Assembly (NCBI GenBank): GCA_024704765.1
Contig: JAKMXF010000277.1
Coordinates: 372,001-436,000 of the forward strand
Origin: Oopsacas minuta
Lineage: Eukaryota; Animalia; Porifera
Length of the DNA stretch: 64,000 nt
Direction of reading: 5' to 3'
Shown here: piece by piece, positions 8,838-35,464 of the stretch
How positions within the stretch are numbered: position 1 is the stretch's first letter
Layout of the letters: each line of letters opens with the position of its first letter
The notes under the pieces: model-generated
Seen by the model: the letters and a program-made list of their open reading frames with translations, nothing else
The model's database searches: none
What the model was told of the DNA's origin: nothing
Translations under genes and position numbers: made by a program

Positions 8838-11800
8838 ACTCAATTCAATTAATTGGAGAGAACACAACAACCAAAACGATAGATCTAGCATTCCATGTAA
8901 AACGACCTTGGAATCGTAGAGGTACCTTTGATGAGTATTTAATTGAATGTAAGGGTGATCTCGGAGAAGTTCAAGTGGTCTCAATCAGAAATGAAGGTCC
9001 TAAAGCTATGAATCTTATAGCTAATTGGTATCTTGATTTCACTAATGTGATTAATTTCCAAACAATGTCAGAACTGACATTCTCATTCTATCATTGGATA
9101 GGAGAAGGAGATCATTTCAGTAATCCAGCTGATAGTAGTGAGTAATTGTGATAAGATATAATGTATTAAGGTATTTTCTGTCAGAAATGTTCCTTTAGGT
9201 GTAGGGAATAGTGCCAACAATTGGTCAAGTTATTGGACTACTATCCTACTACGTATTATTCCTGTTTAACCAAATGAAAGCATTAGTTTGTATATCGAAA
9301 CACTGATATATGAAGCCCTTCAAACGTTACTTAACGCAAAATTCCCTAATCTTTGAACCTCCCCTCCCTGTGTCACGCTTTTTCACTTTGGAATACAAAA
9401 AGATTGGGGATGTCACACTTCGCATACCACCCGCTTCCCTTGTAGCGTTAAGTAATGTACGAAATTACAAGCAGAAATACAGCCAAACCTGCTTAAGCGT
9501 TATACAGAAGTGGCCTCTGTATAACGGTGTGGTTGGTTATGATTAGGCTGATAATCTCATATAATGTAAAATAGTGAATGAGGAATTCAAAACAGGTGAA
9601 TTTTGTTTCAAGTTGATCCAATATTCGCAAACTGTTACTGAAAATGATAGCGCAAGTCAAACAGGAAATTTCAACGTAGCACTCGATGAATTCCTCGAGT
9701 TTGAATAATATATAGTTTTCAAACATTTCTTACGAATTCAATTCCTCCATATCAACAGTTCAAAGTCTTCCTTTTTAAGCTCAATAATTTGTAATATTTC
9801 AACTTTTCCACATGCATGCATTGTACAATGACACGGTGAGCATTCAAATTTTCCAATTGAATAAGATTTAAAAAATTATATTACACTTGGTGAATTTAGA
9901 AATCTGTATTCAATACGGAGCGATGTTACGATCACATACAAAGAGTCAATTATAGCCGGTGAGTATAGCTAGGTAAAAGGCCAACTTCTCTATAGCGGCC
10001 ATCTGTATAGGACGACCACTTTTGACCACTGTAATTGGATAAATGGTACATATATACACTGCCCTCAATTCTAGGTACTATCAATCAGATTGAACATTAT
10101 CCAAACCTAATGAAGCAGAGAATAACACAAATAGAAGATAGAAAGAAAGTGTATATCTGGCAAACATTTCCAGATATTGGTCTGCCCTCTGCAATTGATG
10201 AAAATTTCTATGTTCCAAAGGATGAGGAATTTGAAAAAGCAAAAATTCAAGATAGTAAATCAAATAAATTTATGGGAATGGTATTCGGTCTAAGAAGTGA
10301 CGTAACTAATATCGTAAAGATAAAACTTTCAGGTAACTATGTATGTTCAGTTCATACAACCTAATCACTTTCATTATGAAGACTTACTACACATAAATAT
10401 TAGGATCACTTTGCTGGAGGTCAGTAAATATATCGTTAATTTTGAGTGACAACATGTGAATAATTCTCAGGAAAGTGCTCTCATAATTGCCGAAGATAAC
10501 CTGTATGCACGCTCGTATATGAATACTAATCACCATATATACCGCGCTAAGTTGATTTTCAACTTCTGGATGAAGAATACTTAACAATAGTTATGTTGTT
10601 TTTTTCCAGATCTTTTTGACACAACTATTCGGAATGACCAACCATTGAGAAGCCTACGCAGGGCTGAAAAAGTTGCAAATTCCATGATGGATGTAAGAAT
10701 TCATCAACACATGGAAATCCTGACTTAGATGATACAATACTCTACGCTTGTGAGGCAAACCGTTGGATAAGTGACATCGAGTTTGGAAGGCAATTGTTGA
10801 ATGGAGTTAATTGTGTATTAGTTACTTTGTGTACTGAATTACCAGACAACTTCCCAGTGAAAAATGAGATGGTGTGTAATAGTTTGTGTAGAGGACTGAC
10901 TTTGGAAGAGGAGATGAAGGTAAAAACGCGCTTATCATAATGACTAGTATTTTTGCTGAGCAATGAATTATGTGAATTAACGATCTACCAAAAGATGATG
11001 ATAATTACGTCATATTTTCTCTCGTGTATGAACTATTTTTCATGACTTGAGCTTGAACGAGCCAGGTTCACAAATATCGCAGTATGCTTCTAGTGTTTTT
11101 ACATATTTCCTTTGTACAATTTGTCTAGGATCACAACATATACTTTTGTGACTTGAGTGAGATAATGGATGGATTACAGTGTAAGGAAGGAACTCACTGT
11201 GCTGCTCCGATCTGTCTCCTCTATGTAACGCCTGCTAACGTGACCATTCCTATTGCAATACTGCTGAAGAGAATACCTGGTGATGATAATCCTATTTTCT
11301 TACCATCAGAAAATTGGTTAGACTGGTTAATGGCGAAGATGTATTTTGCTAGTGCAAGCACTCAGGTGATTTATTGATTCTAGTTGTGTATTACTGAATA
11401 ATGCTGTTTAGTCATGTATGGCTACATTAGGGCGAGATTAATAGTCGACAATCTGAAAATTTTAATGGAATGTAGCATTGAGCAGTGTTGAGTGATTTCG
11501 TCCATTCAATTGATATCTGAAAACCTATGAAATGATATGAATTATAAAGTATACAAAAATTTGAATCTCAATACATTTGTTTGTAAATGTGTAATACATA
11601 CGTGTATTATCCATATCCCGCGACACCTCTTGTAACGCTACTGAGAACTTCCGAAGTGGGACTTCTCAATTTAGTATGCTTCCAAAATATGGATGCAATA
11701 AGGATCTGTTTCTATGATCGGTTGTTTGGTGGAATATTATTGGACATCAATTGTATATTAATCTTAACTTTTATAGCATCAGCAAGTCGCAACTCACTTC

Positions 11801-13080
11801 GTAATGTGTCATACTGCGATGGAAGCATATGGAGTTGCTACAATGAGGACTCTACCAGATTGTCATCCTGTGTATAAACTACTCAGACCTGCATTCCGTT
11901 ACACAATCTCTATAAATGTTGTGGGTAGGAAAACGCTCGCCAATCCTGGTGGAATAATGGACAAATTGTTCTCAATTGGTGGTGAAGATGACAGATCTGG
12001 GAAAAACGAGCTGATTGTTAGAACTAACGAGAAATATAATGTACACTGGAGTAACATTAAGCGTAATTTGAGAGAGAGACGTGTTGATAACTCTGATAAA
12101 CTACCAAACTATTACTACAGAGATGATGGAGTTAGAATCTGGGATGCAATGGAATGTTTTGTTAGATCTATGCTAGGCCTGTTCTACACAGATGATACAG
12201 AAGTTGAGAATGATAGCGAGCTTAGAGATTGGACTAATGAGATACATAGTTATGCATTTCCAGCATTCCATGGCGCAATACAGGGTCGTGGGTTCCCTCA
12301 ACAAATTCTGACAAAAAATGAATTGGTAGAATATTGTACACTCATAATGTTCACTGGTTCAGTACAACATTCTGCTGTCAACTTCGGTCAGTTGCAGATG
12401 TATGGATTCGTACTAAATTCTCCAACGACTATCAGAGTACCACTTCCTACACAGAAGGGATCATTCATGAAAAATGACATCTTGAGAGCTCTACCGACAA
12501 TGACTACTGTAGTATTGGCTGCAATAACTGTGAATACACTTTCATATCACAGTATTGATGAGGTAAATAATGATAATCATTCTGTAGTAAAATGTAGTTT
12601 ACATGAACATGGATACAAGAAAACTATTGTTGTATGTAGCTAAAATTTAGTTTTGAAATGTCCAAAGTGTGAATTTCAAGTCTCCCATCCGGTAAATACT
12701 TTCAAGTTTTTCATTCAAATTGAGGCATGTCTATATTTGTGTAGACCAGTGCCTAATGAATACAATACAAAGTAGGCTGCTCCTTATTGTACTGTCGATC
12801 ACTAGAGGTTTGTATGTATAATTGTCGCTTTCATTTGTTTTTTATGAATTTATCTATTCTCATATTTATAATATTCGTTTACTTATTTTCTTGTGTAAAA
12901 ATATATCTCGGAGGTTATCCAACGATGTGGTTTACAGGGGACAAAGAGAGAGCTTGTGTAACAGATTACCAAGAAGCTCTAGCTGTTATCAATGCTGATA
13001 TAATTGAGAGGAACAAGAAACTAGAAATACCGTACAAATATATCATGCCACAGCGTTGTCCTAACAGCATTACCATCTAA
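8838..13080 (+). CDS. PLAT-domain animal-type lipoxygenase, multi-exon, possibly disrupted; first exon not resolved
   Basis: Exons about 8838-9137 (PLAT), 10075-10332, 10610-10919, 11129-11365, 11777-12562, ~12901-13080. Motifs: W..D.EFGRQLLNG.N, WLMAK, HFVMCH iron ligands, QHSAVNFGQ, C-terminal PNSITI. The 10610-10919 exon is out of phase and the last exon lacks an in-phase AG. Confidence 0.88.
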
Positions 13081-14195: not shown

Positions 14196-15238
14196 ATTGT
14201 AATGGATTCCTTATATCAGGAAAACCTAGGAAGCTAGGAAATTCTAATTAGCAATTAATAAGATGATAAATAACTCAGGCCTTATCTCTATAGTTAACTA
14301 TTTCATTCGAGTTCATCACTCGCACTTTACTCCTTTCTCTCACTAACCTAAATTATTACCGGCTCTCGGACACATTGCTTTGGGCCCCCAACTGACCCCG
14401 AGCCCTGGTAATTTGGTGCCAGACTCCCCTCTCTTGTGGGTCCTGCGTATATTGTATAATGGTAGTAAATTTTAACACCCAGTACTCAAGTTTAAATCTC
14501 ACTTTGACAGGAGTGTCTTGAAATTTATAGATGAAAATTGGAATAAGTGTGCCGCAGTTCGAAAAGGTCGAGAAATACTGCAGTATACTATCGTATAGCC
14601 CTCACAGGAAAATATCAGAGAAATTTACTACACACACTTGTGTATAGTACGTTTTCTCGTGGATGCGTTCCAACTAAGAGTTGCCTGTTGCAGCGGCGCC
14701 AAAAGAGGATGGCTAGGGTGGGTTTTACCCATTCTGATTGTTCATTGCGGAGATAAATGTTGGTTGTCACTTGTCAAGTACCCTATTTGTGTTTTCTAAA
14801 TATAAGTGTTATAATTTAATTAGTATTATCTATTGAGGTCATGTGGCAACTGTTATCGAATATAACTAGAGCACTTACATTGGTTTCTTTGAGCATTCAT
14901 ATTTATACTTGTAGATAATTATTCATAGTTGTAATAAGTTTTGTCTCAGGTTCGAAATTCTATTAGAAATTTAATTGAGCAGAGGGAATCAACTTTCGCA
15001 ATTCCAGAAATATAGAAAACTTCTTGCATATTAAGACATGTTAGTATCATTTATATTATAGATTAGATTTGTTAGTAAACACAATAAATTGTATCCAAAA
15101 TTCGCTAAATATTTGAGGTTTACATGTGTTTAACCCACCCTGGCCAAATTGAGTTCTGGCGCCTATGGCCTGTTGTATAGTCAGTAAAGTAAGTAAATGC
15201 AAGATATATTATAAATCTAAAAATTGCTACAAACTTAC

Positions 15239-15519
15239 TGAAAGAATCCTGATCAGTCACGTCATACACTATATTAACTCCTTGTACTCCTCTAAAGACT
15301 AAATGTAGAGTAGTCCTGAACCTGCCATATAAAGATGTATCAAATATCTGTATCTTAATAACTTAACTCACTTAACTCTGTGCATTCTAATGTCCGCTAC
15401 AATAATCATTCGATAGTTGTCATCATATAGTTCTTCAAAACAGTGAAGGAGACTTAATTTTCCAACACATGGTCCCCGATTATGTTAAGTCTGATTTCGT
15501 AGTCATATTCTGCATTCAA
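15239..15519 (-). pseudogene. Degenerate exon 1 of type-B Rab1-like gene, no adjacent exon 2
   Basis: Homologous to 28784-29069 with the same ttca|GTAAGT donor; start reads TTG, P-loop is frameshifted, internal stops. Confidence 0.8.
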
Positions 15520-16273
15520 TTTGACTTAACCTAATCATAAGAGCTAATTCCAAATACCGCATTTGAATCGCTCGGTATGAATTGTAATTAAATAATACGC
15601 GCACCAATGTTCCTAAATTGCATTCTAGGGCAATGAACTATCACGGCACAACTGGTCCGGCTATATGGAAGGTCTCTTACCGGAAGTGCATTTATTTATT
15701 AGGCTTAAAATTTATTTATAGACACAAATAACTCAGTGGTAGTTTAGTGGGCGCCAATTCTGATCCTGAAAGATCGTTCTGCAATGGCTAATTCAGTTAT
15801 AGTACCTACGCCAACTGGCCCGGTATAACAGCCGAGATTATACCCCGTATGAAGTGGGCAAGCTCAGAACATAACCTCAGAGCGGTATGACCTGGGTTAT
15901 TCCAGAATGTACCCGAATATATTTTAGGGTTGCTACAGCGGGCCGCACCAGTTATGGTAAGTGCGGAAGAGTAAAAGCATGAGAGAATCCGAAATACTTA
16001 TAGATGAATGAAATTTTCAAAGAAATAAAATTCTACATAATTTCTGATTTCACAAACTAATAAATACAAAATTAACCATAAAAATGAGAAAATACTCACA
16101 CAAACTGTAATTTAATGACATACCTATATGTAATTATTTCTCTAATTCTTCCCAAATTAATCCCATATAATAATTCTCACAAAATAGCACATGGTATAAT
16201 CCAGTGCATATATAGAAATAGCACAATAATATACACAGAATTACTTTCTACAGTTCACATTGAGATTTCAACA

Positions 16274-17075
16274 ATGAAAGGTATTGCTAGGAATATCGTT
16301 GTGTGTGTTCGTCTGTTTGTTGTCTATTTGATAGTAGTTGAGGCAGTTTGTTGGATAAACTGTCCTACTGAATCACGTGATTTATTAGTGCCCTTCTGCT
16401 ACCTGAATGATGATGGAGGTTCCAGAACATGTAGGATAGAAGTGCATACATCTGATTTAAATGGACTGACTATCCAGAGATGGCATATAGTCAAACTCTT
16501 TATACATGTAACAGATCGAATCATTACTGTTAACATCTTTATCACACTTGTCAGATTATCAGTTGGAAATTTATGCTTTGCGTCAATTAAATCAAATAAC
16601 AAGTTATATATTATACTCTAACAATCACATAGTATCGACATCACTACTTGCCTTATTTCCTAATCTTGAAACATTTCAAATGATTAATGGAAACTTCCAT
16701 CATTTCCCTACATTCTTTCTTTACAATTTTGGGGAACAAGGTTTGCTCTGTTGATAACATTAATAGTGTTTGAATGTAATATTAATCTCTTCAATTGAGT
16801 ATAATCAGATAAAATATCACACTGGTAAATGAATTAATACTATTGTAACCGAAATCAAGAAAAGATAACTGGTACAGCAATGGAGTTTGAAATACAAATT
16901 CTATGTCAGAAAAGTCTGCCTCCTGAATACTTAATGCCTTCAGCCTAACAGGTGGAGATAGTGTCTTGAGTATATTGCTAAATTGCAAATTATTAGTATC
17001 CAAACTAGTCAGGGCAGTGAGACCTGAGAATATAATATTAAAGGTTGCTAGTTCGCTCACAAAGCACCCCTGCAC
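16274..17075 (+). pseudogene. Type II LRR remnant: 5' part (+, 16274-16730) and inverted internal LRR piece (-, 16735-17075)
   Basis: ORFs 16115-16621 and 16548-16754 (frameshift between them) and 16791-17075 on the opposite strand. Confidence 0.85.
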
Positions 17076-17755: not shown

Positions 17756-19362
17756 TTATCTAGGAGGAAGACTAGCAGGAGTTTTATCTGCTTCTGTTAC
17801 AGGTTGTGCTGGAGATGTTTGTATTGGACATGTTTGTACTGGACAAGTTTGTACTGGACAAGTTTGTATTGGACACGTTTGTACTGGACAAGTTGGTGCA
17901 TGGGTAGTAACGACATTGGTTGATGGATTGCAGTTCGAATGACCATTAGTATCCAATACATAGTCTCCACATAACGGTTTTGTTGTTTGTATGAGTTTCT
18001 CATAGTCAATACAACTATTAAGTGAGGTGGAGAAAACTACTCCTTTTCCTTCACACACACACACTCATAGCTATGTAGTGTATCCTGACAGTAAGAACCT
18101 CTTGGACATTTAACTGATTTGTTGAAACACTGATAAGATTGCTCTCTAGTACAGGTTGTGTAGAGAGATGGTAACAATACTGATTTACCTTTATGTTCTG
18201 GTGGAGTATTGCAGGATGGATTTTGGAAATATATATCGTATTTCTGACTTACAATTGACATCCATTCTAACCTACAGTCACAATGAAATGGGTTGTTGGA
18301 TAAATATATTGTTTCAATGTTAGACAGATGCTCGAATACTTTGCTAGAAATAGTTGTGATTGGATTTTGATATAAATCCACTAATAGAAGTTGAGTCATA
18401 TCTCTGAATGTGTCTTCAGGAACTGTTGTTATTCGATTGTAAGCAATCTCTAGATTCTCCACATTGCCCAATTTAGTAAAGTTTGTTCTGTGTATAATAG
18501 TAATGGAGTTTGAAGACAATCCTAGACTCTCTAATTGAGTATAATCAGAGAATATTTCACTGTTAAATGAGTGAATATTATTATTCCAGAAATTAATACT
18601 GGTTAACTGGTATAGCGAGGGAGTTTGCTTTAGAAAATCTATTTCAGATAAACCTGCGTAAAGAATACTCAATTTTTTCAGCCTAACGAGTGGGGATAGT
18701 GTTCTTATTGGATTTCTTAGTTGCAAATTGATAGTATACAATCTAGTAAGAGCAGTGAGACCTGAGAATATATTTTCAGTTACCACTAACCTATACATAG
18801 AAACGAGGTAGAGAGTTTCTAGATTAGGTAATTCACTCACAAAGCTGCTTTCAATTACTTTGACATTTGATCGAACCCCAAAAGATAATAGAGCGAGAAG
18901 AGTTAGTTGTTTGTTGAAAAGTGAAAATATAGGAAAATGATTGAAGTTTCCATTGTACATATCAAAGTGTACAAGATTAGGAAGCGAGGTAAGTAAAGAT
19001 AGTGATACTATGTGATTATTAGAAAAGGATTTGAAAGTTGATATATTATTGAATTGACGATAAGCATTTATTTCTAACTGATAATATAACAAGTGTGAAT
19101 GGATCTGAATAGTATTGATACGATCTGTTACATTTATAACGAGCTTGATTCGATTCCAATTATTAGTCAGTCCATGTAACTCAGATGTATACACTTCAAT
19201 CCGACAATCCGTAGCATCCCCATCATCATTCAGGTAACAGAAGGGCTCTAATGAACCAATTGACTCATTTGGACAATTTATCCAGCAGACAGCCTCAACT
19301 ACTATCAAATACACAACAAACAATCCAACACATACTAAGATACTACTAGCTATACTCTTCAT
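17756..19362 (-). CDS. Type I secreted LRR-LRRCT-EGF protein, copy B; +2 slip in the (GT)n run truncates the EGF and tail
   Basis: 441-aa ORF 18037-19362; homologous frame resumes in 17756-18064. GT run is 13 nt (18052-18064) versus 11 nt in copies A and D. Confidence 0.9.
17817..17891 (-). repeat. 15-bp coding tandem repeat x5 encoding CP(V/I)QT
   Basis: gtttgta(c/t)tggaca(a/t/c) units read directly; one degenerate unit at 17802-17816. Confidence 0.9.
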
Positions 19363-19965: not shown

Positions 19966-21565
19966 TTAACAACAACGACAACAATTAGTGCTTCTTGTAC
20001 CATGAAAGGATCTTGGATTTAAGAGAATCAGTTTATCATGGGTAATATCACCAGTATTGTACCTCTCCTCGTTTTCAAATAAATTCCTTTTAATATCACA
20101 AACAATGGTCAAAAAGGCTTGCTCTACATTAATAGCACACTTTGCACTTGTCTCTATGAAGTTAATCTTCATTTCATCAGCAAACTCTTTAGCTGTAGAG
20201 TAGTCTACTATCTTCTGACTTGTCATATCACATTTATTGCCTACCAACAACTTACATGCATTTGGAATGCAGTAAGTTTCAATTTCCTGTAGCCATCGCT
20301 TAATATTACCTAGAAATTTGAAAAATACTCAATTGAAAATACATTAAACAATAAATTCAAGGATAATACATTCATTATTCAAACTTTTCCAAACTATTGG
20401 AGACTGAAAAGTATATTATTCAATCACAACTAACAAACTTAATGGTATATAAGATTTTCCAAAAAGGAAGCCTTTGGCCAGTGCTGCCAAGTGAATTCAG
20501 AAAATCATTGAGATTGACAAAAAAATTTACGCAGAAACCAAATTCTTTACGGAGCATTTATAATTCCTTATTGAGCCTAACAGGTCTTAATTTACTTTTA
20601 CAAATGCCATTAGCTAACAACTTTTATTATTAATCATTAATATATGTAGATATATGCACGCTTTCGCGTTTGTAAACAATAAATTTTAATCACTATCAGC
20701 ATGCAACAAACTATCAAACTACTATTGTATATGGTCGTACATACTTTGAGAAAATAACTCACACATTTTCGAGGTAGGTACAAACGTTGAGGAATTTTGA
20801 ATATTGACCTTTATCGTTAGCAAAAGTATTACACGTACAGGTAATTCGATAGAAATATATAGAAATAAGTCTTCATACGTAGATACGTAGATAACAGTCA
20901 AATTTACATAGTCTACGTAAATTACGGAGATTTGCAGCACTTCCTTTGCCTGACACGAAGTGTTAGAAAGCGCGCACCGCAAGCAAGCGAAGTGGCTTGT
21001 TATTCTAGAATAGGAAATTTCCTATCGCCGATAAATCGATAAATTAGTGTCAACAAGTGTCAAATCTAACTTGAATTTTTCCAAATATTACAAGATCTGT
21101 TCCCAAACATCTTAGTAACGGAGGAATGTATGAACTTTCATTATATCAACATTTACCATATTCCTAGACAAAATGGACAAATCGAAGACTCATTCTGCTT
21201 AGTTAATGATAACAGGCTATGATTCATATTGTAGTAACATAGAGCACATTATTGTTTGCCACAAACTTACTGAAAGTATCTTGATCAGTGACGTCATACA
21301 CCATCATGATACCATGCGCACCTCTGAAAGATCTTTTCAATACACCCAGAGAATTCCCGAACCTCAAAGAAATGAATGTATCCCATATCTGTAGCTTGAT
21401 AGTTTTACCATCTACATTAACAGTGTGGAATCTAAAGTCCACAGGACACAGTCTAAAGTACTCAGTGTATGAATCTTCCACAAACCTTAAAAGGAGATTG
21501 GACTTTCCGACTCTTGAATCACCGACTATGAGAAGTTTGAATAGGTAGTCACAGTCTACACTCAT
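19966..21565 (-). CDS. Divergent Rab1-like GTPase, type A, copy 1 (212 aa; exons 21271-21565 and 19966-20309)
   Basis: Phase-1 GT-AG intron, open frame. G1 GDSRVGKS, G3 WDTFIS, G4 NKCD, G5 ETSAK, C-terminal CCRCC; Rab1-like YLFKLL and RGAHGI motifs. Confidence 0.9.
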
Positions 21566-22227
21566 ATTGACCTGAACAAAAAATGGCTTCGCTATAATCC
21601 ATGATGGTTTATTAGACGCAAAATACAACAATAATTTCGGGAATCAGGGCTGGATTTGGTTATGCTAGGCCTGGGTGCAGGGTTGTTTAATTTAAATCAA
21701 AATCCGAGTTTTATCAAAATATCTTATTAAAATTCAATATTTTGATGTTTTTATTATTTTCTCAAGCTGATTATGTCCATTCTGATATTATTATGTATAC
21801 CTATCGAAAATCTATTCATTTGTACAGTCAGGATCGCTTATTGTGACCCCTTCATAATGACTTGGCTTAATACAAATCTTATGTAAGCCGAAGAATTGGG
21901 AATTGAGGGGGTTGTTCATATTAAGCCGGATGGTTCAGTCAGCTACCATACAAAATCCGATTAAAATCAAAAAATCCGATTTTTTTGATTTTGTTAAAAA
22001 AATCATGATTTTTATCAACCCTGCCTGGGTGTATAGATTGATGAAACTATCAAAAAAGTATTCTACATTATTTAGGAAGTCACATACTCAGATAACAAAA
22101 TTAAATACTAAATTGATATACATAATCATATGAAAACTCCTGAAATTTGATATATACAGATAAGTATTAAAGAATACATATCAAGTAAGAGCATCATGAA
22201 TAGCACAAAATATTCAGATTATATACG

Positions 22228-22574
22228 TTAACAACAATGACAAAAACTGATGTGTATCCTGCCGCTAACGGAAGAGCCTGGATTTAAGAGAATCCGTTTT
22301 TCATGCGTAATATCACCAGTATTGCTATTCTCCTCGTTTTCAAATAAATTCCTTTTAATATCACAAACAATGGTCAAAAAGGCTTGCTCTACATTAATAG
22401 CACACTTTGCACTTGTCTCTATGAAGTTAATCTTCATTTCATCAGCAAACTCTTTAGCTGTAGAGTAGTCTACTATCTTCTGACTTGTCATATCACATTT
22501 ATTGCCTGCCAACAACTTGCATGCATTTGGAATGCAGTAAGTTTCAATTTCCTGTAGCCATTGCTTAACATTAC
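22228..22574 (-). other. Intact orphan Rab exon 2 (tail ...HISFCHCC) with no adjacent exon 1
   Basis: AG acceptor at 22575-22576, open frame to the stop; upstream intron replaced by the hairpin repeat and LRR remnant. Confidence 0.8.
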
Positions 22575-22589
22575 CTAGAAATTTGATTT

Positions 22590-22755
22590 CTGGCTGCCAA
22601 AAAACTGGTCCCGCACCATTTTTGCAGGCAAATCTGGTCGGGACAGATCACTTTTAGTTGCTAAAACAAGTATCTGATTATTTTTAGCCAGCTAAAACTG
22701 GTCACCGCCACTTTTTGGGAACCAAAACCTGTCCAGGTAAAATTTTGGGCTATCT
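22590..22755. repeat. Hairpin minisatellite, second copy
   Basis: Near-identical to 1597-1757. Confidence 0.65.
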
Positions 22756-22939
22756 AGAAATTATAACTATGTGTTAATTATGCACCATTTAATCTGTTCA
22801 ATTAAATAAAATTTCTATCGAATTTCTATATCTCTATAAGACATAGTCTCCTGAAGGAACAAGAAAACGATTCAAGGAAATACCATTAATCATGCTTTCA
22901 AAAGAATCCTGATAGTATATCCATAGAAAAAGTATAAGA

Positions 22940-23606
22940 TGAATGTATTAAGAATTCAGAAGGCAGAATTATCTGACATAGAATTTGTATTTCAAACTTC
23001 ATGGCTGGATAAGTTGTTTTTCTTGATTTCAGTTACAATAGTATTAATTCATTTCCCAGTGTGATATTTTCTCTGTTTATACTCAATTGAAGAGATTAAT
23101 ATTACATTCAAACCCCATTAATGTTATCAACAGAACAAACTTTGTAGACCAAAATTGTAAAGAAAGAATGTAGGGAAATGATTGAAGTTCCATTAATCAT
23201 TTGAAATGTTTCAAGATTAGGAAGCAAGGCAAGTAGTGATGTCGATACTATGTGATTGTTAGAGTATAATATATAACTTGTTATTTGATTTAATTGACGA
23301 AAAGCATAAATTTCCAACTGATAATCTGACAGGTGTGATAAAGATGTTAACAGTAATGATTCGATCTGTTACATGTATAAAGAGTTTGAATATATACCAT
23401 CTCTGGATAGTCAGTCCATGTAAATCAGATGTATGCACTTCTATCCTACATGTTCTAGAACCTCCATCATCATTCAGGTAGCAGAAGGGCACTAATAAAT
23501 CACGTGATTCAGTAGGACAGTTTATCCAACAAACTGCCTCAACTACTATCAAATAGACAACAAACAGACGAACACACACAACGATATTCCTAGCAATACC
23601 TTTCAT
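22940..23606 (-). pseudogene. Type II LRR remnant, third copy, two frameshifts, same inversion junction
   Basis: ORFs 23259-23606 and 23108-23317 plus the inverted piece 22940-23150. Confidence 0.85.
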
Positions 23607-24281
23607 TGTTGAAATCTCGATGTAAACTATAGAAAGTAATTCTGTGTATATTATTGTGCTATTTCTATATATGCACTGGATTATACCATGTGCTATTTTG
23701 TGAGAATTATTATATGGGATTAATTTGGGAAGAATTAGAGAAATAATTACATATAGGTATGTCGTTAAATGTATTATCTCTCTACCTTATACAAAATACA
23801 GTATAACTCGGATAGTTACAGTCTTATATAGATACAAAAAACTGATCCATGAGACTCAAGTGAGTAGGCCGTGAGATTGGGCATCTCTGGTGTCACTCGA
23901 TGGTTCATAATTCTCAGATGAGTTATATGGATCACCAATTGTGATCTATGGTCCACTAAAGTAGAAACAGCTCACTACCCTACGGGATATACATGCACTT
24001 CGCGCCTCGTAATTCACAGTAGTACTTTATCTATGAGTATTGGGCATTTAACAGTAATGCGTATTTCACTGAAGTATCTATGTTTTGTCTGTAATATTGA
24101 AGAGATAAATTCACATACAATATATGTAAATGATTCTTCACTCAATTTATTCTCATATTACATAATACTACCACAATTAGTGTCTATATATCGCTAATGT
24201 ATATCGAGAAATACATTACAAATAGGGATATCACTATAGCTAATATATATTGACTATTTGAATTAAAGCAAGATATCAACA

Positions 24282-25670
24282 ATGAAGAGTATAGCTAGTA
24301 ATATCTTAGTATGTGTTGGATTGCTTGTTGTGTATTTGATAGTAGTTGAGGCTGTTTGCTCGATAAATTGTCCAAATGAGTCAATTGGTTCATTAGAGCC
24401 CTTCTGTTACCTGAATGATGATGGAGGTTCTAGGCTTTGTGAGATTTACGTGGATACATCTGAGTTAAATGGACTGACTAATCGAAATTGGACTAAAATC
24501 AAGCTAGTTATAAATGTAACAGATCGCATCAATACTATTGAGATCCGTTCAGATTTGTCAGATTATCAGTTGGAAATAAATGCTTATCGTCAATTCAATA
24601 ATATATCAACTTTCCAATCAGGTTATAATAATCACATAGTATCACTATCTGTACTTACCTCGCTTCCTAATCTTGTACACTTTCATATGTACTATGGAAA
24701 CTTCTATCATTTTCCTGCATTTTCACTTTTCAACAAACAACTTACTTATCTCAAACTAAATTATTTCGGGATTCGATCAAATGTCAAATTTATTAGAAGG
24801 AGCTTTGTGAATGAATTACCAAATCTAGAATATCTCTACCTCTATTTTATGAATATATTAGTGGCAACTGAAAATATATTCTCAGGTCTCACTGCTCTTA
24901 CTGGTTTAAATACTGAAAATTTGCAACTAACAAATCCAATCATGACACTATCTCCACTTGTTCGGCTGAAAGCATTGAGTATTGGTTACTCAGGTTTATC
25001 TGAAATAGACTTTCTAAAGCAAACTCCCTCGCTATACCAGTTAACCAGTATTGATTTCTCGATGAATAATATTCAGTTATTTAACAGTGATGTCTTCTCT
25101 GATTATACTCAATTAGAGCGTCTAGATTTGCACTCAAACTCCATTACTATTATAAACAGAACAAACGTTAATAAATTGTCCAATCTGGATTTTCTAAATC
25201 TTGGTTACAATCAAATATCAACAGTTCCTGAAGACTCATTCAGAGATATGCCTCAACTTATAATAGTTATTTTGTATTTCAATTCAATCACAACTATTTC
25301 TAGCAAAGTATTCGAGCATCTGTCTAAGATTGAAGCAGTATATTTATCGAACAATCCATTTCATTGTGACTGTAGGTTAGAATGGATGTCAATTGTAAGT
25401 CAGAAATACTATATAGATTTCCACAATCCATCCTGCAATACTCCACCAGAACATAAAGGTAAATCGGTATTGTTACCATCTCTCTACACAAACTGTACTA
25501 GAGAGCTATCTTATCAGTGTTTCAGTAAATCAGTTAAATGTCCAAGAGGTTCTTACTGTCAGGATACACTACATAGCTATGAGTGTGTGTGTGAAGGAAA
25601 AGGAGTTGTTTTCTCCAGATCACTTAACAGCTGTATTGACTATGAGAAACTCATACAGACACAAGTATAA
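24282..25670 (+). CDS. Type I secreted LRR-LRRCT-EGF protein, copy D (462 aa; the only copy with all domains in one frame)
   Basis: Single ORF: hydrophobic signal, Cys N-cap, about 10 xLxxLxLxxN repeats, NPFHCDC LRRCT, 6-Cys EGF-like region; no TM segment. Confidence 0.93.
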   Translation: MKSIASNILVCVGLLVVYLIVVEAVCSINCPNESIGSLEPFCYLNDDGGSRLCEIYVDTSELNGLTNRNWTKIKLVINVTDRINTIEIRSDLSDYQLEINAYRQFNNISTFQSGYNNHIVSLSVLTSLPNLVHFHMYYGNFYHFPAFSLFNKQLTYLKLNYFGIRSNVKFIRRSFVNELPNLEYLYLYFMNILVATENIFSGLTALTGLNTENLQLTNPIMTLSPLVRLKALSIGYSGLSEIDFLKQTPSLYQLTSIDFSMNNIQLFNSDVFSDYTQLERLDLHSNSITIINRTNVNKLSNLDFLNLGYNQISTVPEDSFRDMPQLIIVILYFNSITTISSKVFEHLSKIEAVYLSNNPFHCDCRLEWMSIVSQKYYIDFHNPSCNTPPEHKGKSVLLPSLYTNCTRELSYQCFSKSVKCPRGSYCQDTLHSYECVCEGKGVVFSRSLNSCIDYEKLIQTQV

Positions 25671-27289
25671 CCTGTAACAGAAGCAGATAAACCTCCTGCC
25701 AGTCTTCCTCCTATATAACTAGTACTTTTTCCCCTTAATCATACTTATTGTTACCATTTTATTGTTAGTTTTAGAGCTAATCAGTTCTGGTGCAATCCAT
25801 TGAGTGTTGATAGACTTGAATTACTATAAGTATGATGCACGATGTGCTGATCGAGATTAGATGAATAGTTTCCTGCAAGGTATTTCAAGATTATTTGTTC
25901 GTTATTTGTGTTGAATTAAGTATATATTTGTTTATTGTTATTCAAAATGTTAGTTATTCGTCAAATATTTGTGGAATTTTCTCTTTTCTTCAAATATTTG
26001 CATAAATATAGTCAATACAATTTGAATGGGAAATTGTCCGTGACACATCTGAACCAAAGTCTGCAGAAATGTTACTTAAGAGTATAATCACAGAATGTGT
26101 ATTCATCGGGCATAACTGCCAACCAAGTAGAGAATGCTAACCTATTTGTGCCATATCCGTGTACAGAGCGCCCATTTTTACATCCTAACAATTTTCCTGG
26201 CTCGCTGAGCTCCCTAGTATTTCACCAAATACTAATTACACTACATACTAACATACATTTTGTGCACAGTGGGAGTTTTGCCTGTTCGAATAGGGTTTGG
26301 GACGGGACATTTCAAGATAATTTCAATGAATATAGTTCCTCAATAATGTATGGAATCTTGTAAAACCAGTACAGAGTATTAGTTACCAAACACAGATTGT
26401 ACAGAGCGCTTTGTGAGTGAGTTAGCAACCTTGAATATAATATTCTCAGGTCTCACTGCTCTGACTAGTTTGGATACGAATAATTTGCAATTTAGCAATA
26501 TACTCAAAATACTATCTCCACCTGTTAGGCTGAAGGCATTAATATTTACAGGTATTTTGCGCTATTTTCTACAATAAATGCGCAATTGTAACTCTCTGAG
26601 AGCTTTTCCTTTGAGAGATCAGCAATAGTAAATATCGGTAGTAGTATTGTCAATTATACTCGATATAATGTTGTTCATGATGTTGCAAGACTTCAAACTC
26701 TCAACTCAACTGCAATCATATTAGGGCTAACTAAAGATAGTTTCGCTCCCACTAGTGAATTTGATAATCGAACTTATACCATTACAGATGCTCAATGTAG
26801 TAGCGAGCCGTTTTACTGTGCCGATTACACTATAGTATAGTGACCCAGTATTGAATGGTTGGCTATACTATTTTGTTTTTCTCCGAGAAAGCCCTGCAGC
26901 CAAACTGGATAGAATTAAGGTGATATATGGTATGAGAACTATTGAAGATATTCGTCGGATGTGCTTCTCCCCTTTGCTAATCAATCGGACACCTAGTGCC
27001 ACTATTTCACACTGGTCAAACTTTTGTCTGGCCTGTAGCAAAAAATTATGAAAGGAAAGGTGCCCAAATTTTCACACTTTTGAAAGAGAAAAATTCTACA
27101 ACTGCATACTCTTCTAAAATTTTATATATTGGTTATAGTTTTTGCTGAAAGTAAATGAAAAATATTCATTTTATAGCACTATGTCATCAGGAATAATTCT
27201 ATTGTTATTAGATGGTAATATATATTAGTTTGGATTCATTGAATATCCAAGTTTAACAATAGCTTTAATTCAAATATTTAATTGATATT

Positions 27290-27790
27290 AGCTATAGTGA
27301 TATCCCTATTTATAAGGTATTTCTCCATATACTTTAGAGATATTTATACACTAATTGTGGTAGTATTATGTAAATGAGAATAAATTGAGTGAAGAATCAT
27401 TTCCATATATTGTATGTGAATTTATCTCTTCAATATTACAGACAAAACATAGATACTTCAGTGAAATACGCATTACTGTTAAATGCCCAATACTCATAAA
27501 TTTTCCGTTGTTATTGTATTTTGAGGCGCGAATTGCATGTATATCCCGTAGCGTAGCGAGTTGTTTCTACTTAAGTGGACCATGATCACAATTAGTGATT
27601 CATATAACTTATCTGAGAATTATGAACCATCGAGGGATCCTAGAGATGCCCACTCTCACGGATCAGATTTTTGTATCCATATAAGACTGTAACTATCCGA
27701 GTTATACTGTATTTTGTATAAGGTAGAGAGATAATACATTTAATATATACATAATTACACATAGACATTTTGGTATACTTATCTAGTAAA
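27290..27790 (-). promoter_or_regulatory. Orphan copy of the LRR upstream region without its CDS
   Basis: Matches 19400-19960 including TATAAATA, and lies next to a Rab 3' end in the same way. Confidence 0.6.
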
Positions 27791-27828
27791 CTACATCATT
27801 AATACCCAAAATATCCAGATTATTTAAG

Positions 27829-29069
27829 TTAACAACAACGACAACAATTAGTGTTTCTTGTACCATGAAAGGAACTTGGATTTAAGAGAATCCGTTTATC
27901 ATGGGTAATATCACCAGTATTGTACCTCTCCTCGTTTTCAAATAAATTCCTTTTAATATCACAAACAATGGTCAAAAAGGCTTGCTCTACATTAATAGCA
28001 CACTTTGCACTTGTCTCTATGAAGTTAATCTTCATTTCATCTGCAAACTCTTTAGCTGTAGAGTAGTCTACTATCTTCTGACTTGTCATATCACATTTAT
28101 TGCCTACCAACAACTTGGGGACATTAGGACTGCAGTAAGCTTCAATTTCCTGTAGCCATCGCTTAACATTACCTAGAAATTTGATAAAACATTTGTTATT
28201 ACTTATAATTAATTCCTGGACATTGTCATAGGTATTTATCTGTTATCAGTTAAACACCTTGACATTTATTTCAATAAATCGAAAACGAGCGGGCTCTGCT
28301 TGCAAACTTTCGTGTATTAAATAAATATCTGTGAAATGGAAATTCAAAAACTTGTAATCGCAAAATGCGGATTCAGCAAACTCCGTTACTTCTATCTTTC
28401 TTTAAGAGAAAGTCTCTACGTAAATCTTGAGATTTCGGTTGTTTATGTTTATTCAAAGAATTCCACATATGATTAATTAAAGTGGGAGAGAATCGGATTT
28501 TAGTCACGTTTTATTGAATTCCACTTATTTTCCAGATAAACAAGATAAACTCTGTATTCTGTTAGATCTGGATTTACGAGATTTAGGCTATTTACTTTAG
28601 AAAAAATTCATTTCCGAGGCCAAAATCTCAGACCAAAAATGTATACCTATGTTTGCTAATTTTCATGCTAATTGGAATGCTAGATTTTGCACGGCCGCGC
28701 TGACGGACAGACGTACGTCACATTGTCCATGCTATTTGGGCATCTCCCTATAGGAGCTGTAATAAAAATTACTACAAACTTACTGAAAGAATTCTGATCA
28801 GTCACGTCATACACTATAATAACACCACGCACTCCTCTAAAGAGTATATATAGAGTAGCCTTGAACCTGCCATATAAAGATGCATCAAATATCTGTAGCT
28901 TAATAACTTTACTATCTAAATTAACTCTGTGCGTTCTGATGTCCACTGTAATAGTCATCTGATAGTTCTCATCATATGGTTCTTCTACAAAACTGTGAAG
29001 GAGACTTGACTTCCCAACACCTGGATCCCCGATTATGATAAGTCTGTATATGTCAAAATCCACACTCAT
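27829..29069 (-). CDS. Divergent Rab1-like GTPase, type B (209 aa; exons 28784-29069 and 27829-28172)
   Basis: Open spliced frame. G1 GDPGVGKS, G3 FDASLY, NKCD, ETSAK, CCRCC. Confidence 0.88.
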
Positions 29070-30206
29070 TTTAACCTAATTAAGTTTTTCTAATCATAAG
29101 TGCTAATGTTAACAAGCGCATTTAACTTGAAGTGTTCTACCTTATCTAGTGTTAATTACGAAATACGACCATCCTAATTCTCTAGATTGCGCTCTAGATC
29201 TGACATTGAACATGAAATTTTGTATAGATGAGATTATCAAGGAAAATTAGAAGTAAATTTGACATCTTTTCTGATTTCACATACTCATAAAGAAATCAAA
29301 ATCCATGCCGACAGTAAATTACAAACTGTCCGACGGCTGAGTCCATTATTTTTATTTGTTTAGTGGCAATATTCATTGGAGGCACTTTATGTTTGGGTAT
29401 TAATCTTTGTTTCATATTGCCTCAATGAATAATGCAACTTAACAAATCTAATTAAAGAACTACTAAGCTGTCGGAAAGATTGTAATTTTAGATCTTCTGC
29501 TAGCTACGCTCGCAATTAATTCTCAAATTACATAAATACTTTGCATATGTCAATTTTTACATTTTTGCTTCATCATCATCACTCCACTATGATTACGTCA
29601 TTGTTATGATGGCCAATGTGTCAGTCCTGATACCTACTACACTTCATCAATTGGAAGTATTACTCTAATTGCTATCGTTGTAAAGTTTTCTGCGTATCAA
29701 ATTTTATGTTGTGTATGACGTAATGGAAATGATGTCTATAGTGTCGATAATTATTTTTTCATATTCTACGACTGTGTATTACCTTTATTGAATTACATCA
29801 ATACCATAGTATACTGTTTATGCCTTCCTACTGTGATTTTGCTTTCTAGTATTCTATTATCCCAAAACCTAATACCACTCCTATAGGATAATTATATAGT
29901 GGCACAAAAGTGGCAGTGTGTCAGATAAAATATGGTTTACCGAGGTGCACACCGCACGCTAATTGTTCATCTATCCTGAAAATTTCAGCCCTGAATCTAT
30001 AATAGTTTTGGCTGTGCGCCAGCGATGGATATAGAAAAAAGGTACAGTAAATAACTACAATAAATTGGAATATATAATCACAACAACTGCAATTACATAG
30101 AGACGTATATACAGTATATACACACTCATTAATGAATAATAATGTATCTAATAAAGGGATTATTATTATTATTATTAAAATATCTTAAAATATCCAGGTT
30201 ATATTG

Positions 30207-31819
30207 TTAACAACAACGACAACAATACGTGTTCCTCTTATCACCAATGTGAGAATCTGGATCTATTATAACCCTGTTATTGTGCATAATATCACCAGTA
30301 TTGTACCTCTCCGCGTTTTCAAATAAATTCCTTTTAATATCACAAACAATGGTCAAAAAGGCTTGCTCTACATTAATAGCACACTTTGCACTTGTCTCTA
30401 TGAAGTTAATCTTCATTTCATCAGCAAACTCTTTAGCTGTAGAGTAGTCTATTATCTTCTGACTTGTCATATCACATTTATTGCCTACCAACAACTTACA
30501 TGCATTTGGAATGCAGTAAGTTTCAATTTCCTGTAGCCATTGCTTAATATTACCTAGAAATTTGATAAAATACTCAATTGAAAATACATTAAACAATAAA
30601 TTCAAGGATAATACATTCATTATTCAAACTTCTCCAAACTATTGGAGACTGAAAAGTATATTATTCAATCACAACTAACAAACCTAATGGTGTATAAGAT
30701 TTTCCAAAAGGAAGCCTTTGGCCAGTGCTGCCAAGTGAATTCAGAAAATTATTGAGATTGACAAAAAAATTTACGTAGAAACCAAATTCTTTACGGAGCA
30801 TTTATAATTCCTTATTGAGCCTAACAGGTCGTAATTTACTTTTACAAATGCCATTAGCTAACAACTTTTATTAATAATCATTAATATATGTAGATATATG
30901 CACGCTTTCGCGTTTGTAAACAATAAATTATAATCACTATCAGCATGCAACAAACTATCAAACTACTATTGTATATGGTCGTACATACTTTGAGAAAATA
31001 ACTCGCACATTTTCGAGGTAGGTACAAACGTTGAGGAATTTTGAATATTGACCTTTATCGTTAGCAAAAGTATTACACGTACAGGTAATTCGATAGAAAT
31101 ATATAGAAATAAGTCTTCATACGTAGATACGTAGATACGTAGATAACAGTCAAATTTACATAGTCTACATAAATTACGGAGATTTGGCAGCACTTCTTTT
31201 GGCTGACACGAAGTGTTAGAAAGCGCGCACCGCAAGCAAGCGAAGTGGCTTGTTATTCTAGAATAGGAAATTTCCTATCGCCGATAAATCGATAAATTAG
31301 TGTCAACAAGTGTCAAATCTAACTTGAATTTTTCCAAATATTACAAGATCTGTTCCCAAACATTTTAGTAACGGAGGAATGTACGAACTTTCATTATATC
31401 AACATTTACCATATTCCTAGACAAAAATGGACAAATCGAAGACTCATTCTGCTTAGTTAATAACAACAGGCTATGATTCATATCGTAGTAACTTAGAGCA
31501 CATTATTGTTTGCCACAAACTTACTGAAAGTATCTTGATCAGTGACGTCATACACCATCATGATACCATGCGCACCTCTGAAATATCCTTTAAATGCACC
31601 CAGAGATTTCCCGAACCTGAAAGAAATGAATGTAGCCCATATCTGTAGCTTGATAGTTTTACCATCTACATTAACAGTGTGGACTCTAAAGTCCACAGGA
31701 CGCAGTCTAAAGTACTCAGTGTATGAATCTTCCACAAACCGTAGAAGGAGATTGGACTTTCCGACTCTTGAATCACCGACTATGAGAAGTTTGAATAGGT
31801 AGTCATAATTTACACTCAT
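30207..31819 (-). CDS. Divergent Rab1-like GTPase, type A, copy 2 (213 aa; exons 31525-31819 and 30207-30553)
   Basis: Direct duplicate of 19960-21660. G3 region reads WATFIS (Asp lost); distinct hypervariable tail ending CCRCC. Confidence 0.9.
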
Positions 31820-32128
31820 ATTGACCTGAACAAAAAATGGCTTCGCTATTATCCCTGATGGTTTTATTAGACGCGAAATACAACAATAATTTCGGGAATC
31901 AGGGCTGGATTAGGTTATGCCAGGCCTGGGTGTATAGATTAATGAAACTATCAAAAAAGTATTCTACATTATTTAGGAAGTCACATACTCAGAAAACAAA
32001 ATTAAATACTAAATTGATATACATAATCATATGAAAACTCCTGAAATTTGATATATACAGACAAGTATTAAAGAATACTTATCAAGTAAGAGCATCATGA
32101 ATAGCACAAAATATTCAGATTATATACG

Positions 32129-32471
32129 TTAACAACAATGACAAAAACTGATGTGTATCCTGCCGCTAACGGAAGAGCTTGGATTTAAGAGAATCCGTTT
32201 TTCATGCGTAATATCACCAGTATTGTACCTCTCCTCGTTTTCAAATAAATTTCCTTTTAATATCACAAACAATGGTTAAAAAGGCTTGCTCTACATTAAT
32301 AGCACACTTAGCACTTGTCTCTATGAAGTTAATCTTCATTTCATCAGCAAACTCTTTAGCTGTAGAGTAGTCTACTATCTTCTGACTTGTCATATCACAT
32401 TTATTACCTACCAACAACTTAGGTATATTAGGACTGCAGTTCAATTTCCTGGAGTCATTGCTGAATATTAC
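32129..32471 (-). pseudogene. Orphan Rab exon 2, frameshifted
   Basis: Duplicate of the 22228 region with an extra base near 32250 and a deletion near 32440. Confidence 0.83.
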
Positions 32472-34154: not shown

Positions 34155-35464
34155 CAGGGTGGCTCCAAAGTTCTGATACAAACCATTTTGTCTATAATAT
34201 TTATTCAGCATGACCTACATTATTGATTCTCTATATATAATTAATACATACTATTAGGAAGAGATTGCCTAGTCATTTATTCAATATAACCACCCTTTTT
34301 GGAAATGACAGCCCTGAGTCTGTTCGGGAATCCTTCTACTGCAGCACGCAGAGTTTCTTGGGGTATCTTCTCCCATTCTCGACACAAGGAAATCTTTAGA
34401 GCTAACTGTGTTGTGTGACACAGAACAAGCCTTGTTTTCCAAGATAGACCATACAGAATAGTCCATGGGATTTAAATCGGGACTTTATGGTGGCCATTCA
34501 TCCTTATGTATAAAATTGGGAATATTGTGCTTCAGCCAATCTTGGGTCGTATTGGCCGTATGGGTGGGAGCACCATCTTGTTGGAAGACAAATTGCTGTC
34601 CAGAAAACATGGTCTGGCTCAGACCTTTTACCACAGGCTTTAACACAAGCTCTTGGTATGTTTTGGCATTGATTTTCACTCCTGGGGGGATGAAAATCAG
34701 TGGTGTCCGACCAACAGCAGAGACCCCAGCCCAAACCATCACCGACTGTGGTTTCTTCATCCGACTGATATATCTGAACTTATCAGGGATCGCTGAAACT
34801 GAGGTCGAGATGACTCTGTCGTTTTGGCTATTTGTAGCCTCTTCAATGGTGAAAATTTTCTCATCTGAGAAAATGGTATTTTCGAGAACTCCAATAGCGT
34901 GTAGAGCAAGTAGGCTCTTGCTCCGGGACACTCTCTTTTCTTTCACCGACCCAGATAGGAATTGTACCTTTTTGCGTTTAAAAGAGCGCATTCCTAGGTC
35001 CCTTTTGACAACCTTTTGTATTGCTCGGCGAGATATATTGAGCTCCAAGGCCATTTACCTCATCGAACGGTGTGGGTTCCGCCGAATCCGTTCTCGCACC
35101 ACTTTCTTGAGAGCTGAGGTCGTTACAGAGCATGGACGACCAGATCTCGGCTTGTCTACAGTGTCCCCAGTTTCCTTATATCGATTTATCGTCCTGTAGA
35201 TAAATGCCCTACGTCCTTTTGCAATATTCAGCAGTTTCAAAATTTCTGATGGACTTTTCCCCGCCATATGCAACTCAATAATTGCTGACCTCTCAGATTC
35301 CATGGTCAATCACAATTTTTTTCGAAATAGAATACACCAAATTGAAATAATATTTGGTAGGAAGCGTATAAGGTATGTCATAGAAGAGCAAACCATTGAG
35401 AATACTTCCTGATAATGGTTGTATATTAATCATGATTTTGTATCAGAACTTTGGAGCCACCCTG
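34155..35464 (-). mobile_element. Full-length (1310 bp) DD37D/maT transposon, inactivated
   Basis: Perfect 28-bp TIRs CAGGGTGGCTCCAAAGTTCTGATACAAA with TA on both sides. Transposase 35309-34277 has in-frame TAA at 35055 and 34485 and a late frameshift; FSDEK, QDGAP and SPDLNPMD spaced D37D. Confidence 0.97.

Follow-up and report, generated by a model that had tools for sequence, protein, structure and literature searches.

We examined a 64,000-nucleotide (nt) stretch of the genome of the glass sponge Oopsacas minuta (GenBank assembly GCA_024704765.1, contig JAKMXF010000277.1, positions 372,001 to 436,000 of the forward strand; hereafter the window) that carries a cluster of genes derived from the small GTPase Rab1. 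The window holds three intact members of this cluster, each with two exons and encoded by the minus strand: A1 (19966-21565), B (27829-29069) and A2 (30207-31819), encoding products of 212, 209 and 213 amino acids, respectively. Each is interrupted by a phase-1 intron with the boundaries TTCA/GTAAGT and TTTCTAG/GT (coordinates of all features are collected in Table 1). A fourth intact copy, the type-A gene A3, lies 385 nt before the window start (locus L001:10001-11595). Its protein, P0001 ('ORAB-1'), is the best database match to exon 1 of A1 (91% identity) and ends in NTYCF, without a Cys-Cys tail.

A preliminary description of this DNA had reported three intact genes that keep the G4 and G5 motifs and a prenylation tail while losing G3, and every string it quoted can be read in the sequence. 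The phosphate-binding loop (P-loop; G1, GxxxxGK[ST]) is retained in every intact copy, as GDSRVGKS in A1, A2 and A3 and as GDPGVGKS in B. All intact copies also have the motifs for guanine specificity, NKCD (G4) and ETSAK (G5), both of which lie inside a gene-converted core of exon 2 that we discuss below. A C-terminal CCRCC is found in A1, A2 and B, which gives three of the four intact copies a double-Cys geranylgeranylation motif, A3 being the one that lacks it. The G3 motif DTAGQ reads DTFIS in A1 and A3, ATFIS in A2 and DASLY in B, exactly as described for the three window genes, and its Gly and Gln are absent from all four copies. The motifs and an alignment to human Rab1A likewise confirmed the earlier statement that the switch-I Thr is missing from type A, whose P-loop carries an Arg at the Gly equivalent to Ras G13 (GDSGVGKS in Rab1A, GDSRVGKS in type A). 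The Rab1A switch-I segment TESYISTIGVDF is altered in type A by loss of this Thr and deletion of one residue: YISTIGVDF of Rab1 has become YFRL[C/R/H]PVDF (YFRLCPVDF in A1, YFRLRPVDF in A2), with Leu in place of Thr. This Thr, a ligand of Mg2+ and of the γ-phosphate in a working switch, is present in type B (YQMTITVDI). Switch II of type A, besides losing Gly and Gln, has a 3-residue insertion relative to human Rab1A. We considered a compensated frameshift as the source of the new switch II and rejected it, as the other two frames of the canonical hexactinellid exon 1, read by eye, resemble neither type; the new switch II more probably arose by substitutions and a 9-nt insertion.

The RabF motifs are IGVDF, KLQIW, RFRSIT, YYRGA and LVYDIT. 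At the equivalent stretches, type A keeps KLQIW and VYDVT and has PVDF, RFGNSLG and [SY]FRGA elsewhere; type B has TVDI, KLQIF, RFKATL, LFRGV and VYDVT. The Pfam Ras domain (PF00071) matched both exons in all three window genes, with E values of 1e-19 to 1e-22. An AlphaFold2 model of A1 preserved the Rab order of secondary-structure elements from β1 to α5, and a Foldseek search with this model found its best matches in Rab1b (4hlq, the top match) and Rab1a, with a target-normalised template modelling (TM) score of 0.81.

The genome also holds an intact canonical Rab1 on another contig (JAKMXF010000111.1; locus L004:3001-5290; residues 1-199 of protein P0241), which has all G motifs and an intron at the same phase-1 position. 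A second canonical Rab1 of hexactinellid type (ENA assembly ERZ20067936, locus L002) shares this gene structure. In a maximum-likelihood tree, A1, A2, A3 and B formed one clade (support 100/100) that was sister to the canonical O. minuta Rab1 (97/90), within a clade of hexactinellid Rab1 (100/100). The tree took in no Rab35 or Rab8 sequences; against solved structures, full-length B matched Rab1A with an E value of 7.5e-60, Rab8A with 5e-41 and Rab35 with 3e-38, and exon 1 also matched Rab1A best (5e-30). From the tree placement and the shared intron position we conclude that A1, A2, A3 and B are Rab1-derived, lineage-specific paralogues, in line with the derivation from Rab1 and the amplification proposed earlier. 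A viral or transposon-borne Rab was ruled out by the host Rab1 intron position and the sister relation to host Rab1. We found no relatives with A-like or B-like switch sequences outside O. minuta in word searches of 5.8 billion proteins, where a protein of either type would rank ahead of canonical Rab1, and a scan of JGI metagenomes for type-A relatives returned only canonical-type Rab1 at 55% identity or less. Neither Rab proteins nor GTPases are mentioned in the O. minuta genome paper (PMC10280926), and Rab is likewise unmentioned in another sponge genome paper.

We next turned to selection on exon 1, measured as nonsynonymous (dN) and synonymous (dS) divergence and their ratio, ω. Between canonical O. 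minuta Rab1 and the other hexactinellid Rab1, dN was 0.06 with dS saturated, giving ω below 0.07. The ratio was 0.39 between canonical Rab1 and A1 (confidence interval (CI) 0.22-0.67), 0.51 between canonical Rab1 and B (CI 0.29-0.86) and 0.6 between A and B (CI 0.33-1.15; dS 0.55). Within exon 1, switch regions had ω of about 0.8-0.95 in most comparisons, and the remainder had 0.22 in A and 0.55 in B, so that the scaffold, to judge from these ratios, is under relaxed purifying selection. In a neutral simulation with as many differences as observed, exon 1 had a chance of 2-5% per lineage of being free of stops. None of the three indels disturbs the frame, the ATG and splice sites are retained, and the P-loop GxxxxGKS is intact in all intact copies and broken in a pseudogene of the cluster (15234-15519). 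Together these observations argue that the intact copies are not long-dead pseudogenes.

The young type-A copies differ by 1.4-2.0% in their introns and by up to 4.8% in exon 1. Across exon 1 of A1, A2 and A3 we counted 13 nonsynonymous and 3 synonymous changes. The 31 switch codons hold ten of the nonsynonymous changes (binomial p = 0.001) and none of the synonymous ones; codon 40, for example, encodes Cys in A1, Arg in A2 and His in A3. The nonsynonymous rate in the switch regions was 0.138 per site against 0.026 per site in introns, a 5.3-fold difference (Fisher p = 7e-5). Because relaxed constraint cannot exceed the neutral rate, this pattern suggests diversifying selection, and the former switch face of the young A copies appears to be actively diversifying. 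The preliminary description had named neutral dN/dS throughout, as in decaying pseudogenes, as an outcome that would count against it; what we found was a scaffold ω of 0.2-0.55, retained frames and type-A switch regions evolving well above the intron rate.

Exon 2 has a different history. The cluster includes, in addition to the intact genes, three orphan copies of exon 2 (orph22, orph32 and orph1) and the broken B-type exon 1 mentioned above. We detected no exon-1 remnants upstream of the orphan exon-2 copies at E < 1. One orphan precedes each type-A gene on its strand (orph22 and A1, orph32 and A2, orph1 and A3), and the duplicated unit is therefore an orphan exon 2 plus an A gene. A1 is a recombinant or gene-converted A/B mosaic, because it is of type A from exon 1 through the intron and into the 5′ part of exon 2, and this portion is joined to a B-type tail and downstream region: the 500 nt downstream of A1 are 91% identical to those of B, yet the A and B introns cannot be aligned. 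All seven copies, the two frameshifted orphans among them, share a nearly identical core of about 165 nt in exon 2, with dS of 0-0.1 compared with about 0.5 for exon 1 and the tail. The earlier account had placed change in exon 1 and near-invariance in this core, which holds as a description, amino-acid change being centred on the switch face; it overlooked the C-terminal tail of exon 2, which is also highly variable and occurs in three types (one shared by A1 and B, one by A2 and A3, and one of the orphans). A view of the core as constrained at the protein level is not supported. Purifying selection was ruled out by the synonymous sites, which are invariant too, and by the presence of the same core in frameshifted orphans; the sameness therefore points to gene conversion or recent spread as its cause. 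On this comparison we conclude that the near-invariant core reflects concerted evolution by gene conversion and gives no evidence of protein-level constraint. We also discarded the possibility that A1 and A2 are a haplotype or assembly duplication, as their flanks differ (59% identity over 500 nt upstream and 47% downstream) and there are DNA contigs that reach from A2 exon 1 into the upstream flank specific to A2.

Four public sequencing runs (X1-X4) from a single 2023 study were available. None is labelled as RNA; the library type of X4 is unrecorded and we take it to be RNA from its behaviour, and the O. minuta genome paper reports RNA sequencing from the same project (PMC10280926). Depth in X4 was hundreds to thousands over exons and 3-30 over introns. 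Contigs from X4 lack precisely the 611-nt B intron (28173-28783) and the 971-nt A2 intron (30554-31524), both with GT..AG ends. Neither joint was found in X1-X3, which cover the introns. Since exactly these introns are removed, we conclude that types A and B are both transcribed and spliced as modelled. A silent locus, which the preliminary description had also named as an outcome that would speak against it, is not what X4 displays.

The same runs yielded further observations on the transcripts. X4 contigs ending at the A2 acceptor (31828) and at the exon-2 acceptor of orph32 (32473) run into the same non-local sequence, ...AAAAAACTTAC(AG). This common 5′ sequence looks like a shared leader, possibly added by spliced-leader trans-splicing; a leader of about 37 nt has been described in the glass sponge Aphrocallistes vastus (PMC10282587). 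A search of the window for the putative leader AAAAAACTTACAG gave no matches. A 1,469-nt X4 contig spliced over the B intron (window 28784-29758) extends about 690 nt upstream of the B ATG and then enters sequence unlike the window; it has 25 differences from the window. The B transcript may therefore have a long 5′ leader, or the contig may come from another allele or from an additional B paralogue. Contigs from X1 and X3 that span A2 exon 1 and its own upstream flank encode K71N and N4D (window 31607 and 31810) with no synonymous difference. At 31810, X4 has both the reference and the variant form, and the variant states equal those of A1 and A3, which suggests allelic polymorphism or conversion between paralogues.

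Starting from the anatomy, origin, splicing and selection pattern observed, we favour, with somewhat better than even confidence, the reading that the cluster encodes Rab1 paralogues that bind nucleotide but neither hydrolyse it nor switch, and whose interaction surfaces are diversifying. The A and B types would have arisen in a cluster evolving by birth and death, through segmental duplication, non-allelic recombination and gene conversion. The products would still bind guanine nucleotide, because the Lys/Ser of G1, NKxD and SAK are kept. They are predicted to have lost both γ-phosphate contacts and the catalytic residue, because both types lack the Gly and the Gln of G3, and type A lacks the Thr of G2 as well, and they would therefore neither sense the γ-phosphate nor hydrolyse GTP. 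The type-A Arg at the G13-equivalent site would add bulk next to the phosphates. The expected product is Rab1-shaped and probably lipid-anchored, with a conformation that would no longer report GTP versus GDP; such proteins could act as constitutive, membrane-anchored Rab1-like adaptors or competitors. The former switch surfaces would then be free to change, with shifting protein partners in place of simple decay. What we say of nucleotide binding, lost GTPase activity, prenylation or a cellular role is prediction at this stage.

Several points weigh against this reading. Its biochemical side (binding, lack of hydrolysis, prenylation) is deduced from motifs. Rab escort protein (REP) and GDP dissociation inhibitor (GDI) usually contact the switch regions of Rabs, and prenylation of the A and B copies may therefore fail. 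The AlphaFold2 model of A1 is only moderately confident, with a mean predicted local distance difference test (pLDDT) score of 65.5 and values below 50 in switch I. The evidence for expression consists of assembled contigs of one run, which give no level, tissue or translation and in which paralogues are not fully separable. The excess of switch changes over introns could come in part from gene conversion that homogenised the introns while older patches persisted. The absence of synonymous changes in the switch codons, against 2.9 expected, is only marginal (P about 0.055), and dN/dS over the whole exon is about 1 among the young A copies, on small numbers. Finally, some members of the cluster may be dying, because A3 has lost its Cys-Cys tail, A2 has lost the G3 Asp and the cluster is rich in broken fragments.

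The last two points also bear on the strongest alternative, which we regard as possible but distinctly less likely: that the genes are expressed yet functionless duplicates turning into pseudogenes, neutral by-products of birth and death in a recombination-prone region, with decaying switches and leaky, neighbour-driven or read-through transcription. The near-unity dN/dS among A1, A2 and A3, the missing prenylation Cys pair of A3 and the missing G3 Asp of A2 would all be expected of such genes, as would the fragments, broken or orphaned and at least four in number, that lie within 35 kb of one another and the roughly 690-nt upstream leader on the B transcript contig; gene conversion, moreover, accounts for the conservation of the exon-2 core. 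What tells against functionless duplicates is that reading frames, in-frame indels, ATG and splice sites have survived a dS of about 0.55, which would be improbable under neutrality, given the simulated chance of a stop-free exon 1, that ω is 0.22-0.55 outside the switch regions, and that the P-loop is intact in the genes and broken in the true pseudogene. A switch nonsynonymous rate 5.3 times that of the introns is also hard to obtain by decay, as relaxation alone cannot top the neutral rate.

The preliminary description had proposed that the genes serve as decoys or sensors for Rab1-targeting effectors, or as dominant modulators of secretion. We hold it much less probable that they have such a decoy or sensor role towards microbial effectors, or are guardees of co-amplified leucine-rich repeat (LRR) receptors, with a switch face that mimics Rab1 to trap or report effectors. 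Change in these genes does outpace the introns and is centred on the face touched by effectors, guanine nucleotide exchange factors (GEFs) and GTPase-activating proteins (GAPs), and the tandem amplification is interleaved with a co-duplicating LRR receptor-like family. Bacterial effectors are known to target Rab1, and in Rab1B numbering the Legionella effectors AnkX and SidM/DrrA act on Ser76 and Tyr77, respectively (PMC3398914). However, the Ser76 equivalent is replaced in all four copies (Arg in A1, Gly in A2 and A3, Ile in B), and the Tyr77 equivalent is Ser in A1, Tyr in A2 and A3 and Leu in B. With Ser76 lost everywhere and Tyr77 present only in A2 and A3, the copies are not decoys for the AnkX and SidM chemistries in general. 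The switch indels and the absent G3 make mimicry of native Rab1 doubtful, and the linkage to LRR genes is perhaps mere co-duplication. To our knowledge, no Rab1-targeting intracellular pathogen of O. minuta has been described, which also counts against it. A conflict-type role is conceivable, if improbable, given how fast the switch face evolves and that the genes are linked to amplified LRR genes. An adaptive module, in which prenylated, non-switching Rab1 mimics with former effector faces under diversifying selection, co-amplified with the LRR genes, would serve as decoys or guardees that sense or soak up microbial or selfish-element factors aimed at Rab1 between endoplasmic reticulum and Golgi, seems to us just as improbable; if true, it would be an animal case of small-GTPase decoy immunity.

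Least probable of all, by a little, is that the copies still work as GTPase switches, with non-canonical residues (the P-loop Arg18, for example) taking over catalysis or γ-phosphate sensing, and are Rab1 isoforms specialised for the syncytial tissue found in glass sponges. In favour of this are the intact G1, G4 and G5, the switch-I Thr of type B and the existence of atypical GTPases that cycle without the canonical Gln. Against it, the G3 Gly that contacts the γ-phosphate and the Gln are gone from all copies, type A has no switch-I Thr and bears indels in each switch region, and the switch residues vary among near-identical paralogues, unlike a conserved catalytic device.

The non-switching paralogues we propose can be compared with several known systems. 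Canonical Rab1/Ypt1, including the O. minuta Rab1, is their direct ancestor and their sister in the tree, and shares with them the two exons, the phase-1 intron position, 52-60% identity, the fold, the P-loop, NKCD, ETSAK and the C-terminal Cys-Cys, as well as RabF2 (KLQIW) and RabF5 (VYDVT) in type A. The sponge copies differ from it in lacking DTAGQ and, in type A, in the loss of the switch-I Thr, both indels and the Arg at the G13 site; their ω is 0.4-0.6 compared with less than 0.07, and they are multi-copy, clustered and mosaic. RGK proteins (Gem, Rad and Rem) are classed as pseudoGTPases that bind nucleotide, do not hydrolyse it and act independently of nucleotide state (bioRxiv 10.1101/2022.06.21.496996). 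RGK, Rnd and RhoH proteins resemble the sponge products in their small-GTPase fold, non-canonical G2 and G3 and C-terminal membrane targeting, the behaviour of the sponge products being predicted. They belong, however, to the Ras and Rho branches and not to Rab, and are ancient, conserved and single-copy with known partners, whereas the sponge genes are of recent origin, confined to one lineage, amplified in tandem and diversifying to this day. Nucleotide-binding pseudoGTPases such as RGK would thus be the closest functional analogues. Class i pseudoGTPases, such as the N-terminal domain of AAGAB, lack G motifs and bind no nucleotide (PMC12490416). They share the GTPase fold, the loss of catalysis and a role in membrane trafficking through protein-protein interaction, but the sponge proteins keep G1, G4 and G5. 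Species-restricted bursts of Rab paralogues, some without consensus G motifs, also occur in Entamoeba, Trichomonas and ciliates. Those repertoires are very large, whereas the O. minuta cluster is small, recent and restricted to Rab1, lies in a compact animal genome and has a switch face that changes faster than introns.

The Rab copies are interleaved with LRR (LRR_8) receptor-like genes that encode a signal peptide and a Cys-rich, EGF-like C-terminal part. This family includes a 1.1-kb inverted repeat pair with 89% identity. The two families co-duplicate, because sequence from upstream of the LRR gene recurs downstream of both A1 and B, in a stretch that is about 91% identical between the two. 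Tc1/mariner-type transposase frames and exons of a lipoxygenase-like gene also lie in the window. Public annotation names the cluster genes ordinary 'Rab-1A' or 'ORAB-1'. The NCBI model P0238 ('Rab-1A isoform X2', 288 amino acids) starts in orph22 and is spliced from a donor in the orph22 tail to an acceptor before the A1 ATG, a fusion that could be an artefact of annotation or else reflect transcription by read-through or in an operon-like unit. For A2 there was no annotated protein among the database matches. The canonical O. minuta Rab1 is annotated as a 377-amino-acid fusion (P0241) with a downstream caspase-like Peptidase_C14 gene; its genomic frame ends in GKKKASCC and a stop. Comparative Rab surveys on this proteome would be misled by the ordinary Rab labels, the fusion of A1 with an orphan and the fusion of Rab1 with the caspase-like gene.

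Table 1 Features of the window (positions within the 64,000-nt stretch)
Feature	Position	Strand	Remarks
A1 exon 1	21271-21565	-	98 codons + 1 base; P-loop GDSRVGKS 21500-21523, switch 21434-21460, degenerate G3 DTFIS 21368-21382; Pfam Ras 1.9e-20
A1 intron	20310-21270	-	961 nt; 98.1% identity to A2 intron; served as neutral yardstick
A1 exon 2 + stop	19966-20309	-	NKCD, ETSAK, B-type hypervariable tail, CCRCC; annotated only inside fused NCBI model P0238, residues 77-288
B exon 1	28784-29069	-	GDPGVGKS, YQMTITVDI (switch-I Thr retained), G3 DASLY; identical to NCBI protein P0121
B intron	28173-28783	-	611 nt; spliced out in X4 contig
B exon 2 + stop	27829-28172	-	NKCD, ETSAK, CCRCC
A2 exon 1	31525-31819	-	G3 ATFIS, G3 Asp also gone; GDSRVGKS, YFRLRPVDF
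A2 intron	30554-31524	-	971 nt; spliced out in X4 contig
A2 exon 2 + stop	30207-30553	-	A2/A3-type tail, CCRCC
Splice acceptor AG	31826-31827	-	7-8 nt upstream of A2 ATG; equivalent for A1 at 21572-21573; joined in X4 to non-local leader
orph22, orphan exon-2 copy	22228-22571	-	open frame, third tail type, no exon 1 upstream; 663 nt upstream of A1
orph32, orphan exon-2 copy	32129-32471	-	frameshifted: 5-nt deletion + 1-nt insertion; 310 nt upstream of A2
orph1, orphan exon-2 copy	about 1236-1581	-	1-nt deletion in core; upstream of A3, Tc1/mariner insertion between
Broken B-type exon 1 pseudogene	15234-15519	-	no ATG; stop + frameshifts; GDPCVGKL, FDTSLYGRF
LRR receptor-like gene	3286-4763	+	
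LRR receptor-like gene	17756-19362	-	
LRR receptor-like gene	24282-25670	+	
LRR gene fragment	2112-2609		
LRR gene fragment	16115-17075		
LRR gene fragment	23108-23606		
LRR gene fragment	26413-26577		
Tc1/mariner-type transposase frame	466-1002	-	sits between orph1 and A3
Tc1/mariner-type transposase frame	34485-35054	-	
Lipoxygenase-like gene exons	8831-13080	+	between Rab/LRR units; PF00305 in overlapping locus L001

Taken as a whole, the evidence shows a genuine Rab1-derived cluster that is lineage-restricted and expressed. It fits best as a variation on the pseudoGTPase theme, with a suggestive signal of diversifying selection. Natural Rabs that have a nucleotide pocket and a lipid anchor but no γ-phosphate sensor are rare, and here several close versions, differing mainly at the former switch surfaces, would stand beside an intact canonical Rab1 in one genome. 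The cluster may thus serve as a ready comparison set for what a Rab can do without switching and for which contacts REP, GDI, GEFs and GAPs truly need. A switch face that outpaces introns suggests changing partners and, if confirmed, would be a sign of conflict, or of neofunctionalisation at a fast pace, in an animal from an early branch.

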